The position numbers were made by a program, and so were the translations under genes. A stretch of 49,590 bases of DNA from Sluysia triapertura. Taxonomy: Eukaryota. Under the pieces are notes generated by a model. That model saw only the letters and a program-made list of their open reading frames with translations. It ran no database searches and had not been told where the DNA came from. This document shows, piece by piece, positions 2,156-13,588 of this stretch (its first letter is position 1; the number at the start of each line of letters is the position of its first letter). The stretch spans positions 1 to 49,590 of the forward strand of contig JBJNIA010000006.1 of the NCBI GenBank assembly GCA_046118255.1, written 5' to 3'.

Positions 2156-3547
<1,392 letters not shown>

Positions 3548-6838: not shown

Positions 6839-8644
6839 GATTATTATTTTATTAAAATTCAATAATATTTAAAGAACTTTATAGTAAGTCTTAATAATCG
6901 AAAACGTAAAGAAGCATCTTAACAATAAATATCTTTAAAAAGCACTTACTATGAAAGATAAATTAAAACAAAATTTAACAAGGATGGTAATTAGATGATT
7001 AAAGATTAAATTGAAACACAGTTGAAACTAAAAATAAACAATTTTATTAAAATAGAAATGAAAAAAGAATGCAGTAAGTACAAACAAGTAGAAATTGTCA
7101 CTTAATCACTAAATAAATTATATTACACCAAATCAATATTTTAGGAAAACATTAACATAAAAGAAATTGCCCGTATGAAAACAAATACATTAAATTCATT
7201 TATATGCTTTTAACCACAGAAAGAAATGGATCATTTATATCTGAATGACACCATTTATTGTGTTTATGTAACGGTTATTAATGTTTATACATTTTATTGA
7301 TCAAACATTCGTAATTTCGAATTTTCGTTTTATGTATTTGAATTAATCGACTGTGACACAAAAATGATTCATACTTTTAACGACTTTTGTTTTTTATATT
7401 TAACAATATCTTGCTAACAATAGGGGATTTAATCATGAATTTCACATAATAAGTTTATTTAGAAAAACAGTATCAAATTCATTACTTATTTCGATAATAT
7501 AATATTATAATACGAGTATTCATGCATTAGTATAGCATTTGTATATTTTATTCAGTAATTAACAACTGTTAATAAAGTATTACAAAAAAATTAATCCAAA
7601 TTGTAACAGTATTAATTAATTAATTAATTAATTAACTGAGTAAAATTTTATTTATGCAAATGTTATACTACTAGTTTTTGTTATACAATTAACATTTAGT
7701 GTCTTAATAAGTTAATTTATTTTCAAAGATTGTAATTGTGAGAATAATTTTTTTAATGAATTTAGAATAATTTTAAATCATTAATTATTAAAAATGAAAC
7801 CGAAATACAAACAAAAGGTCTTAAAAGTTTACTTAACTTCTAAGGCAAAATATCTTAAAACAATTTAAAAATACAAAGAAAACAAAAGAAAACATAAATG
7901 GAACAAGAACAGAATGCTATATATGATTTTAGTAAAGTAGAACTGAATACCAGCAGACAAAAAATATATGCTAACACAACTGATAAATAAAAAATTAATT
8001 AATTAATATATAAAAGAAATTTCTCATATTATTATGAAAATAATTATATTATAATAATCATTTATACATTTTTAACTATAGAAAGAAAATGGCCATATAA
8101 TTGAAATTAACTATAGATTAAACTTAACTGCATAAAAGTTACTGTAGAATGAAATTCAACAAATTATTGGTCCTTAACATAGTGTCAGTGACAATTACTA
8201 TATAAATGGTTATTTTCTGTTGAAATAAAAACATTCACTTTTTGTAATGATATAATTAATTTCAGAAATTGGTGTAATAATGTAAATGTTGGTAATGAAG
8301 TATGGATTTTATTTCTAATATGATTGTGACTTATAAAGAAAAGGATATATTTTTAAAATATAGTTGTGGGAATTCTCTTGGTATGACTTAAAATAACTTT
8401 TCCTAGTTTCATTACATTGTATTTCGTTAATACCTAAATGTGTATCGTTCATTTCTTTATTGATTTTATTTAATCAAAATTTTATAACTTTTACTATATT
8501 TGGTCTTAAATTCAATAAGAACTTCTTAAACTTATTACCTATTGGATCGTCATATAAATAATTACTGGGTAATTTTATTATAGTATAAATATAGTTATAT
8601 ATAATTATAGTTTTATTTAAATATAAATATATGCATAACTACAC

Positions 8645-8824
8645 TTCTATCTCTAATATTCGAGAAAAGTCCTGAATTAACCACGATGTAAAGACTACTT
8701 ATAAACATATTGAATTGTCAATATTCGATATTCTATCAAATGTCAATATTCTATCTCTAATATTCGAGAAAAGTTCTGAATTAACCACGATGTAAAGACT
8801 ACTTATAAACATATTGAATTGTCA
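8645..8824. repeat. 76-bp direct duplication with 28-bp spacer
   Basis: 8645-8720 and 8749-8824 differ by one base. Confidence 0.9.
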
Positions 8825-9051
8825 GTAAAAGTAAAATTAAACTCATGCAATAATTTGAGATAAATGCGAAACATAATGTACACAAAAACTTTACGAAAAA
8901 AGGAATTAGATGAGAAACAACCATCACGAGATTAATTATAAACTAGTTTGATTGATTATTCGCAAAACTAAAGCATTACAAAAACTTTCATGTTAAACAT
9001 CTTCAATAAAGAATTATCTACTAAAATAAAATAAATATTTTCGGTGAAACT

Positions 9052-9296
9052 TTAAACCCTTAACGCGCAGAAACGTATTAACACAGGCGTGCAAAACCGG
9101 TCAAAATGTGCAGACCCGTATATATACGGTCGGCGTCGCAACTTATGTCGCTAAAATGTTCAGATTCGAATATATCCGGGTATTAAAAATAACTTAATAT
9201 TTATTGAAATTAAGGTCCAAATGTGTATTTTCTTAAATAAAAAAAATTGATTTTTTTAGTCGGTTTTTTTTTAAAAATTGTGCATTAAGGAGTTAA
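9052..9296. mobile_element. piggyBac-type non-autonomous element (MITE, about 237 bp)
   Basis: TTAA at 9052-9055 and 9293-9296 flank imperfect TIRs ACCCTTAACGCGCAG / CTCCTTAATGCACAA (reverse complement); internal palindrome CCGTATATATACGG and a related second subterminal copy. Confidence 0.6.
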
Positions 9297-9769
9297 ATTA
9301 ATTTTAATTTATATATCGTCAATGAAACAGAACAATGTAAAAATAAGTCAATTTATTTTGAATTTAGTATTATGAGAAATTTATTTTGACAAAGTACTCA
9401 CACAGAACTAAATATCACACAAATATTTGGAGTTTAGATGATACTAATTAGCATGATAAGATAAGTACATTTAATATTGAGATTTTGTCCACAAATGAAA
9501 TAATTATATAAAACAATCCTAAGTGGACTATATTATATCAAAATTATATTAAAATATGATTCGTATAGATTAATACGAAAAAAATCTATTTTAGATTTTT
9601 TTGTATGACGAAATTATGAAAATAATCTTGAATTGCATATTAGTATCATCGGAAAATATCTTTTGTCATTATTTATTCAAAAGAAACAAAAATATTCTTA
9701 TTTAGAAGAATTTTTTTGACTTATAGGATATTTTTGAATTTCGACATCATCTATACATTTTGTATGTTT

Positions 9770-11055
9770 TTAATGCATTTCATGTTCGATTTCTCCATCA
9801 CCACCTTCTTCTTCGTCATATTCTTCGTTTGTTTCAAGTGCTGCATCTTCAATTTCATTTTCTTGTTCTTCAACTTCATCAATTTCTTCTTCAACTTCTT
9901 CTGCCTCTTCATTTTCTGGTGACCGTGTTCCTGTTGTGTATCCTTCTGCATCTTCCTCATCTTTGGCTGATGCCCCTACTTCGATATAATCATTTATCAA
10001 ACTAGTCATTGAATCTCGAGCTTCATTAAATTCTCCTTCTTCCATACCTTCACCAACATACCAATGGACAAAGGTACGTTTTGAAAATAGTATATCAAAT
10101 TTCTTCAAAAGTCCTGTCCAACAACAACCAATAGCTGTTGTATTTGTTAACATCAAAACGGATCTTAATGTTTGAGCGATTTCACTACCTGGTACAGCTG
10201 TTGGTGGTTGACAATTTATACCTATTTTAAATCCTGTTGGACACCAATCAACAAATTTAATATCTGTTCGTCTTTTTATCTCAAAAACAGCAGAATTGAC
10301 TTGTTTTGGTGTTACATCTCCGCGATATTGCAAACAACACGCCATATATTTGCCACTAGCTAATTTTATAGTCACTAAGGAACTTTTATCATCAAATATA
10401 GCCCTGGTTAATTCATTAATACCTAAATATTCATGATCAGCTCGTCTAGATGAAAGCACAGGTGTGTATGCTGTTATTGGATAATGTATGCGTGGATATG
10501 GTACTAAATTTGTTGTAACTTGATCAAGATCGGCATTAAGAAAGCTTTCGAAACGTAATGATACAGTTAATGAACTAAACACCTGTGCTAATATTCTGTT
10601 TAGATTATTATAAGTTGGTCGACCGATATCTAATGTATTCACACACATATTATTAACAGCATTATTATCTGTCATGCTAGATATTTCTGCATTATCAATA
10701 GATGTTGTAATACTTAATAATGAATTGTATGGTTCTACTACAGCAGTTGCCAAATTAGCACATGGTATTATAGCATATTGAAATTTGGATCGTTTTGTGT
10801 ATTCTACTCCAGTTCTTTCAATTAAAAGCGAAGCAAAACCAGAACCAGTACCGCCACCATAACTATTTATAATAAAAAAACCTTGTAACATATCACAATT
10901 ATCAACTGCTTTTCGTAGACATTCTATCGTTGTTTCAATTAAAGTTTTACCTAAAGTGAAATGACCTCTTGCATAATTGTTTGCTGCATCTTCAGCTCCC
11001 GATATAAGCTGATCTGGGTGCCATAAATTACGGTATGCACCAGTTCTGACTTCAT
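9770..11055 (-). CDS. TUBA: Divergent alpha-tubulin, 3' exon (residues 76-503 in canonical numbering); 5' exon(s) not found
   Basis: Colinear with alpha-tubulin from DEVRTG to DYIEVG with no indels or stops; [16 protein letters not shown] and [13 protein letters not shown] retained. Acceptor ...ATAACAG|ATGAAGTC at 11056/11055 is phase 1 in codon 76; the ORF-track start MYVYIT is intronic. Confidence 0.93.
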
Positions 11056-12396
11056 CTGTTATGTAAACATACAATAAAATAAAAAGAAATAATTAAAATA
11101 CTTCATTTATAAAATAAATTCTAAACTTTTATTTAATGACTAATTTAAATACCATTAATATAATTTGAAATATAGCTGAAATATAATATTGGATTATATT
11201 TGTGACTAGATTTGGTTGGAGCCTATTTATGATTTATTTTAGTGATCTCACAATTGATCTCATAGATTGAAATGACATTCAAGAGCGTCAAATTATTTAT
11301 TTATTTATTATTTTTGTTGTTACATCAAAGTATAATTTTTATTTTATACCACAAAAAACGTATATAAACGCAACTAAATGCCACCACATTTCAATAAACA
11401 TTAAATCAACTCAATTATTTAGTAACATTCAGTATCAGTACTAGAAATTTTGGATTATTTTTGATTAATAAATTTATTAAGTTATTTCTTGTAAGTTCGC
11501 TTCGACTCTTGCAGTCAAAATATTAAAATCACACTTAAATTCTTTCTTTGGTATATTTTACCATCCCGATTTAATGAGGGGAAAATTTTGTATTTAAAAT
11601 TTAAAAATTAATAATTAAATTCCTGAAAGGGTCTGAATTATAAAATATCTATTCTATTCTTACTCCTACTCAAATTGAACAGTGTCTTATAATAAACCTT
11701 ATATTTTTGTTATTATTTTGATGTTAATTTGTTGTTAATTTCCGATATTTTAAAAAATTCATTTAGAACAAGTTGGAATAAGATTACCTCAAAATGAAAT
11801 CACAAGTACGAGACCCTCTAACTAGTATAGAATAAGAATTAAAATTTAAGTAATATGCGTTAATTCAAATTTTGATAGCAAAAACGATTGTTTTAGTTAA
11901 AGGAACTCCCAATCTACGTCATAAGTCTTTTACTGTAACCGGACCTTCCTCAATTTTATTTTGCCTTAGGTTTAGAGTTAAGAAAACCACAACGCATAAA
12001 TTTATTATTCACACATCACACAAACATACAGTAATTCACAAAATACATAAGAAAATCTCTAATTTTAATTATGTTAAATCACAATCTGATCATCTAATTC
12101 ACGTCGTAATCATACATTCGTAAATCATCAAATATTTTTTGTTTCTTTAGCAAACTATTCAATTATAATGTTCCAAACAAACAATTTCAATAAGGTTCAT
12201 TTTCAAGTCCAAACACAATGTTTCACACGATCTTTTACTTTACACTATTCAAAATCATTCTATTACTCTTATAGCTTCAAAATCTTTAAATTTGTTAGTA
12301 TTTCAAACAATTAATTTAACACATTTAATAATAATAAATTAAATTAATAATACTAATAACAATAATTACATTAGTTATACAATAATAACCTTAATC

Positions 12397-12467
<71 letters not shown>

Positions 12468-12819
12468 NNNNNNNNNNNNNNNNNNNNNNNNNNNNNNNNN
12501 NNNNNNNNNNNNNNNNNNNNNNNNNNNNNNNNNNNNNNNNNNNNNNNNNNNNNNNNNNNNNNNNNNNAATAAGCACCATCATTGGTATGCAACATATAGT
12601 AAAATAGTTGGTTGTCAGATTAAGTGATAGTAGATCACTACATATGTTTTGATTAATTGACCTTTAAAATCGACTTTGATCACTTAATCTTTGATTCCAT
12701 ACAAATACCCTAAACTCCATACGCGAAGCACTTAAACTCTAAATCCATATAAACCAAAAACTAAAAACACTATCCTTAATTTGCAACGCTAAATCCAAAT
12801 TTAATACTCTAACTAAAAG

Positions 12820-12911
12820 CCAATACAAAATATTCAACCAATGAGATCGTTCAAAACTGTTACACAACAATCATGAGTAAATCACATTTTCGAGGGGATG
12901 GTTTGGCGCGG
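12820..12911. promoter_or_regulatory. CCAAT boxes plus E2F-like site
   Basis: CCAAT at about 12820 and 12838; TTTGGCGCGG at 12902-12911. Confidence 0.25.
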
Positions 12912-13435
12912 ATATATCCACGTACTTCTAAAATGAAATTGATTTTCGTATGCTTAAATATTACATGATCTATTATTTGCCAATAAACTTCGTAAAATAT
13001 GTTAAAGAACTCTATACATAGTACAAATTTAACATAGCTAATAATAGAAACACTTAAGTTGAATTAATTAAATTATGATTTTTCGTTGTTTAACATTAAT
13101 TTTTTATTTGAATTTTGTAAATTTATTATGATCCATGACATCGTTAAATTAAGCCAAGTTATGTATAAATGTTGCATCACATTTATATTTAGTTCTTAAA
13201 GTTATCTTAAGATAATTTAGAATGTGTTGAATAATAAAAATGTGTATAATAATTAGGAAATTTGTATCAAGAAATTTAATAATTTGAATTTTACAAAACT
13301 TTGATGTTTATTATTTTCTCATTTCTCGGAATACGTGATTTAAATTGTTGAATTTCCTTTTAATTACTTGATAAAATTAAATTAAATAAAAACTAATTGA
13401 ATGTATATAATTATTATTACATTTTGCAAATTCAG

Positions 13436-13530
13436 AAAATTTAAATGTTGAATCAGATAAAAATGAAACATATCAATTTAAAGATTATACAAATGAAGCT
13501 AAAAGAATGATACGAATAGCATTACCAATG
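13436..13530 (+). CDS. MATE/SLC47-family transporter exon (N-terminal, into TM1)
   Basis: ttcag| ...KDYTNEAKRMIRIALPM |gtatga; corresponds to the SLC47A1 E.R.LL.LAGPA exon end and splices in frame (phase 0) to 15150. Confidence 0.75.
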
Positions 13531-13588
13531 GTATGATTTAATTTATCAATAAATAATAAAACACTGTTTTATTACATAAAAAGCATTT

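Follow-up and report, generated by a model that had tools for sequence, protein, structure and literature searches.

An alpha-tubulin exon with glutamine at position 254, the position of a catalytic glutamate, was found in the genome of Sluysia triapertura. It is read here as the large 3′ exon of a conserved flatworm alpha-tubulin paralogue (gene B) that lost Glu254 early and whose product would form a GTP-locked lattice; for this reading as a whole we give a probability of roughly 0.58. Alpha-tubulin Glu254 is the trans-acting catalytic residue for the E-site GTP and, as the switch linking polymerisation with GTP hydrolysis, it underlies dynamic instability. Its mutation is dominant-lethal in yeast, and to our knowledge the residue has been treated as universal. 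Gene B lies in a window of 49,590 nt, the whole stretch of DNA that was analysed, which is one entire contig (C6) of a 619-Mb assembly comprising 263,945 contigs.

Gene B in a tandem array of alpha-tubulin genes

The window is very AT-rich (21–32% G+C) and holds three alpha-tubulin genes (A, B and C) in tandem on the minus strand, all with the Pfam domains Tubulin and Tubulin_C. Gene A (2156–3505), used as the comparison gene, is a canonical alpha-tubulin that reads TEFQ at residues 253–256 and ends in EEY; its T1 loop (3478–3505) reads GQSG where GQAG is usual. Gene C (13589–14923), with 77% identity to gene A, is an alpha-tubulin of intermediate type that reads SEFQ and keeps Glu254; it ends in ...DCDNEKFI, with no acidic EEY tail. 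Gene B shares only about 55% of its residues with genes A and C. That gene B might be a recent degenerate duplicate of one of them was considered and rejected, because of this low identity and because it is closer to genes of other species.

The open reading frame of gene B spans 9770–11074 on the minus strand, and its coding part corresponds to alpha-tubulin residues 76–503. By ORF, Pfam, alignment and the roughly 55% identity to its canonical neighbours, the segment 9773–11055 is the last and main coding exon, followed by a TAA stop codon (9770–9772). A splice acceptor AG (...acataacag/AT GAA GTC) lies at 11056–11057, in phase 1 within codon 76, and its position and phase recur in two orthologue loci (L043 and L044). 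Residue numbering was anchored on Asp76 (11056–11054), and the upstream exon should supply the first base of that codon. About 95 nt past the stop, AATAAA (9672–9677) is a candidate polyadenylation signal, picked from the sequence only.

Both domains were recognized well above their cut-offs, Tubulin (PF00091) with 114 bits (cut-off 33; 1.2e-32) and Tubulin_C (PF03953) with 131 bits (cut-off 26.6; 4.1e-38), and the best protein matches of gene B were all alpha-tubulins. The first-pass annotation had described a frame of 428 codons with the GGGTGSG loop and the H11–H12 surface intact, and all of these were seen in the ORF and the alignment: the frame runs open to the TAA at 9772–9770, the T4 loop GGGTGSG lies at 10838–10858, and VEPYN (T5), Asn249, Asn258, Lys352 and the H11–H12 block are retained. 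What that description did not convey is that the frame starts at residue 76, so that this exon lacks the first 75 residues and with them the GQAG T1 loop. The alpha-specific eight-residue S9–S10 insert is also present, TAVPGSEI aligning gap-free to TVVPGGDL, and near the N-site otherwise conserved residues are altered, with DNNAVN in place of DNEAVY. The protein closes with an acidic C-terminal tail of 67 residues (9773–9973) that ends in ...GEIEHEMH, and the tyrosination motif EEY is absent. Judged by descent and predicted fold, gene B is an alpha-tubulin, but it departs from the canonical pattern at Glu254 and EEY.

Glutamine at position 254

Codon 254 of gene B (10520–10522) reads CAA and encodes Gln in place of the catalytic Glu; this rests on the sequence, on contigs of the sequencing run X1 and on invariance of the residue in the clade of gene B. 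The initial observation, that Glu254 is replaced by Gln (CAA, 10522–10520) and Gly246 by Ser with no indel, is borne out by a gap-free alignment against gene A (2156–3505), in which the T7–H8 region of gene B, SLRFESFLNADLDQVTTNLVPYP, presents the segment LNADLDQV versus LNVDLTEF in gene A. LNADL had been recognized as the beta-tubulin wording of this loop, and beta-tubulin representatives indeed read RFPGQLNADLRKL. Further changes relative to canonical alpha-tubulin are T253D, G246S, F255V and Ala250. Codon 253 (10523–10525) is GAT, giving Asp for the canonical Thr, a state that the alignment shows in the B subclade only, and the second acid of the GAP loop, Asp251 (10529–10531), is kept.

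The only public run found to contain the locus, X1, was available as contigs at about 15x; it is not recorded as RNA and is probably the source DNA of the assembly. Its contigs tile positions 9500–11937 and, although not independent of the assembly, show no other letter at 10520–10522. Nearby they differ only at 10514, where a T>C is synonymous. In the tubulins that our searches brought up, motif residue 254 was E in 199 instances, Q in 12, all of them from the clade of gene B, and D in one, a pattern beyond chance.

Several features of the surrounding DNA were observed alongside. A unitig at 10352–10585 (234 bp, covering T7–H8) has about ten times the local depth (170 versus 15) and carries the synonymous T>C at 10514. 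Additional pieces of gene B, about 230–300 bp, occur elsewhere in the assembly (G000:C246790:328-625, locus L046, and G000:C198408:1-116, locus L047); they are 90–94% identical to gene B, one of them is frameshifted, and both still read DLDQV. These extra T7–H8 copies may represent a gene fragment captured by a repeat. Further upstream, at 11850–12037, X1 contig depth sums to 7,000–20,000 with many loose ends, the mark of a very high-copy repeat; the DNA here is presumably intronic or intergenic. Joints in X1 were considered as splice junctions and rejected, being short-sided joints in repeats.

A conserved flatworm clade with Gln254

A search of 5.8 billion proteins with gene B returned mostly canonical alpha-tubulins at 55–57% identity. 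Three orthologues, P0012 (UniParc UPI00060D14C4), P0014 and P0021 (the latter two from Logan run SRR33002330), are 66–71% identical to gene B, and all have D-Q at residues 253–254 and long acidic tails. P0012 covers the full length, and its N-terminus is normal (...EIICINTGQAGVQ...). A region-restricted search added Q7Z1L8 of Schmidtea polychroa, A7M6D9 of Dugesia ryukyuensis and several unnamed sequences, all with Gln254. Gln254 and Ser246 do not vary among nine aligned clade members, in which the clade motifs CCLQYRG and FEIKRR are likewise fixed; long non-canonical tails are found in all clade members.

The planarian sequences Q7Z1L8 and A7M6D9 resemble gene B in belonging to the same divergent clade and in sharing Gln254, Ser246, CCLQYRG, FEIKRRTD and a long non-EEY tail, with about 62% identity over residues 240–410. 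They differ in forming sister subfamilies rather than orthologues of gene B, and in having Ser, Leu or Asn at residue 253. Both entries are named alpha-tubulin in UniProt. The Schmidtea polychroa gene was reportedly described in 2003 as a divergent alpha-tubulin, and that study is said to have found it expressed in the testis. Part of this clade has been in the databases since 2003, and gene B is a further member of it. No paper on an animal alpha-tubulin without Glu254 turned up in our literature search.

In a quick maximum-likelihood tree of 47 rows, gene B grouped with P0012 and P0014 (SH-aLRT 95) and with P0021 (94), and the sister of this group was a pair made up of a paralogue from the same genome and P0125 (99). 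An 18-row divergent clade that includes the planarian sequences excluded the canonical alpha-tubulins with SH-aLRT values of 72–89, a moderate support for the deep nodes. This placement beside planarian sequences agrees with a flatworm origin of the genome. Only three changes between E and non-E at residue 254 were counted over the 47 tips. Gene B had first been treated as a singular natural mutant, a description that has to be given up: it is one member of an old and large flatworm family, and a precedent exists in the alpha3-tubulin of Toxoplasma.

Searches beyond named sequences gave a broader view of residue 254. When a profile was run against 1.84 billion cluster representatives, a library without taxonomy, 146 representatives were compared at this position, of which 99 have E, 16 D, 9 Q and 6 K (beta-tubulins), with 11 carrying other residues and 5 a gap; non-Glu254 alpha-like tubulins are not rare among these divergent clusters. 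A search of the 5.8-billion-protein set with a profile of the clade alignment was dominated by fused tandem canonical tubulin models and added no named members, and the ESM Atlas returned only generic tubulin clusters.

The gene structure is also conserved. In L043, the genomic contig of P0014, an ATG is followed directly by gtgagt, the next exon reads PEIISIHVGQAGVQ...EPTVL plus one base (G), and a 48-nt phase-1 intron leads into AT GAA GTT, matching the gene B acceptor in both site and phase. The acceptor of L044 has the same phase, so a phase-1 intron between codons 75 and 76 is common to gene B, L043 and L044. Gene A shares with gene B the fold, the domains, the T4 loop, the S9–S10 insert and the H11–H12 surface, but differs in having Glu254, Gly246 and an EEY tail and in having no intron at codon 75/76. 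At its N-terminus L043 (bases 1–382) reads MPEI and not MREC, and other clade members have MKEI (Q7Z1L8) or MREV, which suggests that the tubulin autoregulation signal is altered in part of the clade.

A comparison with orthologues, including dN/dS, had been proposed in the first-pass annotation. The alignment showed Gln254 to be invariant, and codon comparison of gene B with two orthologue genes gave dN of 0.22–0.26 but no ratio, because synonymous sites are saturated and dS was not computable by NG86 or YN00. The 66–71% identity, the saturated dS and the invariant Gln254 support, with no omega value, long-term purifying selection on gene B.

The missing 5′ part of gene B

The exon for residues 1–75 of gene B was not found anywhere in the 49.6-kb window by tblastn with two paralogues and the P0012 N-terminus, the only N-terminal matches in the window being the exons of genes A and C, and reading all three minus-strand frames of 11040–13600 likewise revealed no gene B N-terminal exon. 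The T1 loop GQAG (residues 10–13, N-site GTP) accordingly has no counterpart for gene B in the window; it is present in P0012 and in exon 2 of L043. Between genes B and C, 1.4 kb upstream of the gene B acceptor, lies a scaffold gap of exactly 100 N (12468–12567), a count that does not give its true size, and exons 1–2 of gene B could lie inside it. Orphan N-terminal exons of the alpha-tubulin family are many on the small contigs of this fragmented assembly (e.g. L001).

The absence of this exon from the assembled sequence is one of the points that would fit a truncated or dying copy, a pseudogene in the making, in a family that is functional in other species. So would the terminal branch of gene B, which at 0.39 is about twice as long as those of its orthologues (0.15–0.19); the only run with the locus is not recorded as RNA, and fragmentary and frameshifted copies of gene B exist on other contigs. 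Nevertheless, we consider such decay quite improbable. The frame stays open for 428 codons at about 29% G+C, where some 8% of random codons would be stops, and the acceptor is conserved in place and phase. The gap 1.4 kb upstream and the many orphan N-terminal exons speak against decay as well. As for the branch, every divergent-clade gene of this genome has a terminal branch 2–4 times longer than those of its orthologues, that of gene B being the shortest, which points to a lineage-wide, AT-driven acceleration rather than to decay of gene B.

Predicted effect on GTP hydrolysis

For the conserved paralogue, we infer that a GTPase-dead isotype is the best reading. In the sequence of events that we propose, Glu254 would have changed to Gln early in the lineage of this flatworm paralogue and would then have been fixed together with Ser246, the long tail without EEY and the intron at 75/76. 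Since the T4 loop, VEPYN, Asn249, Asp251, Asn258, Lys352, the S9–S10 insert and the H11–H12 surface are kept, the gene B protein is expected to pair with beta-tubulin and to enter the lattice. Once there, its T7/H8 loop would fail to trigger GTP hydrolysis in the beta subunit beneath it.

The expected consequence is taken from engineered human tubulin. Microtubules of recombinant human alpha-E254Q kept their GTP, underwent no catastrophes and bound EB3 along their whole length (PMC11893814), in agreement with the earlier statement that engineered E254 substitutions give hydrolysis-deficient, hyperstable microtubules; human alpha-E254A was likewise hydrolysis-dead and alpha-E254D hydrolysed more slowly (PMC7018511). 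E254N is a further engineered change at this residue. By analogy with human alpha-E254Q, the gene B isotype alone would give GTP-locked, catastrophe-resistant microtubules, and mixed with canonical alpha-tubulin it would give GTP islands. Gene B and the engineered human protein have the identical substitution at the identical position, but the latter is a single change in a canonical protein, whereas gene B carries about 45% further substitutions and a 67-residue tail. Of the functional GAP-dead isotype suggested at the outset, the substitution is real, purifying selection is supported and the human E254Q counterpart is dead; the loss of GTPase activity in gene B itself is predicted from these.

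Asp251 and the new Asp253 stay near the site, and some residual hydrolysis is possible. It is conceivable, though we rate it unlikely, that the isotype still hydrolyses GTP, perhaps more slowly, through these two acids or through its remodelled T7 loop (Ser246, Ala250), and would be slow rather than dead. In its favour, Asp251 persists, the B subclade and several paralogues have conserved Asp253, and human E254D still hydrolyses GTP, though slowly (PMC7018511); in Toxoplasma alpha3-tubulin the acid has likewise shifted to 253 (PMC10056924). On the other hand, human E254Q alone abolishes hydrolysis despite Asp251 (PMC11893814). Across the Gln254 clade, moreover, residue 253 outside the B subclade and those paralogues is Ser, Leu, Asn, Thr, Met or Ile, and residue 251 is Asn in Q7Z1L8 and P0126, so that neither acid is a requirement for the clade in general. 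Asp253 is therefore unlikely to be a general substitute, and the earlier suggestion that it could partly stand in for Glu254 finds little backing, with Asp at this position in the B subclade and Ser, Leu or Asn in planarians.

The gene B protein has only 55% identity to canonical alpha-tubulin, its tail is unusual and its T7 loop remodelled, and dozens of alpha-like genes in the genome are still more divergent; it might instead cap, nucleate or sequester beta-tubulin as something other than an ordinary lattice subunit, in which case the loss of Glu254 would reflect a lost polymer-dependent GAP role. We regard this as very improbable, since the blocks of the longitudinal and lateral interfaces, the S9–S10 insert, Lys352, Asn249, Asn258 and the H11–H12 surface are conserved, and engineered E254Q tubulin polymerises well (PMC11893814).

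A natural parallel to the proposed GTPase-dead isotype is found in apicomplexans. The alpha3-tubulin of Toxoplasma gondii and its coccidian homologues have Q or H at residue 254, an unusually long tail at the C-terminus and a changed MREI signal at the N-terminus (PMC10056924), and for alpha3-tubulin, in which the acid is shifted to 253, reduced GAP activity and stable polymers were proposed from its sequence (PMC10056924). The gene B clade resembles it also in its altered N-termini (MPEI in L043, MKEI in Q7Z1L8). The two differ in that alpha3-tubulin is apicomplexan, presumably of independent origin, and has lost Asp251, which gene B keeps.

As to where such microtubules would be used, stable arrays of male germ cells or sperm seem the likeliest, if speculative, place, and a male germ-cell role for the gene B clade is plausible. 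In sexual D. ryukyuensis, several tubulin homologues and a CCT3 paralogue, not matched to the gene B clade, are among the top testis-expressed, sexual-specific transcripts (PMC6467871).

A large family of alpha-tubulin-like genes in the genome

Gene B is one of many relatives in this genome. The N-terminal exon of alpha-tubulin has more than 90 matches there, and the main exon has 93; most of the divergent N-terminal exons stop exactly at residue 75, whereas the canonical genes read through. Among the intact main exons, of which the genome has at least 30, Glu254 is present in 11 of 30 and absent in 19 of 30, the latter carrying Gln (7), Val (4), His (2), Ile (2), and Leu, Asp or Ser (1 each). 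Dozens of the alpha-like genes in the genome are still more divergent than gene B.

A wider reading, which we hold tentatively and at somewhat less than even odds, starts from the 19 of 30 intact main exons without Glu254 (Q, H, V, I, L, D or S instead), many of which have very long tails, and from the testis-specific chaperonin paralogues of planarians. Flatworms would possess an old and diversified tool-kit of natural GAP-dead alpha-tubulins that hard-wires non-dynamic, GTP-state lattices into particular structures, with gene B as one conserved member; sperm cortical microtubules or the 9+'1' axoneme would be examples of such structures.

If this holds, the flatworm family would supply GTP-lattice tubulin from nature and represent a case of animal convergence with apicomplexan alpha3-tubulin. 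Gln254 genes kept under purifying selection and multiplied in an animal lineage would demonstrate a deliberate use of hydrolysis-dead tubulin by cells, and their products would serve as natural proteins for studies of the GTP lattice. The flatworm structures that contain non-dynamic microtubules would be pinpointed, which could matter for tubulin-targeting anthelmintics. A feature that is conserved, multiplied in a lineage and directly testable with recombinant-tubulin and planarian methods should be of interest to microtubule biology.

Some further observations concern the relatives of gene B. Loci L014–L042 of this genome (G000) form a very large radiation of alpha-tubulin-like genes, which includes a well-supported group in which residue 254 is hydrophobic or Ser (L025, L027, L028, L031, L032, L035 and L038) and ORFs of up to about 680 residues. 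An SHRY insertion ahead of the T7 loop was seen in L029, L030 and L039. Outside the flatworms, P0155 of the fish Trachinotus anak, a tubulin alpha-1C-like protein model, reads DLTDFQ, that is E254D in an otherwise canonical sequence; either the sequencing or annotation is at fault or this may be a genuine variant with slow GTPase activity.
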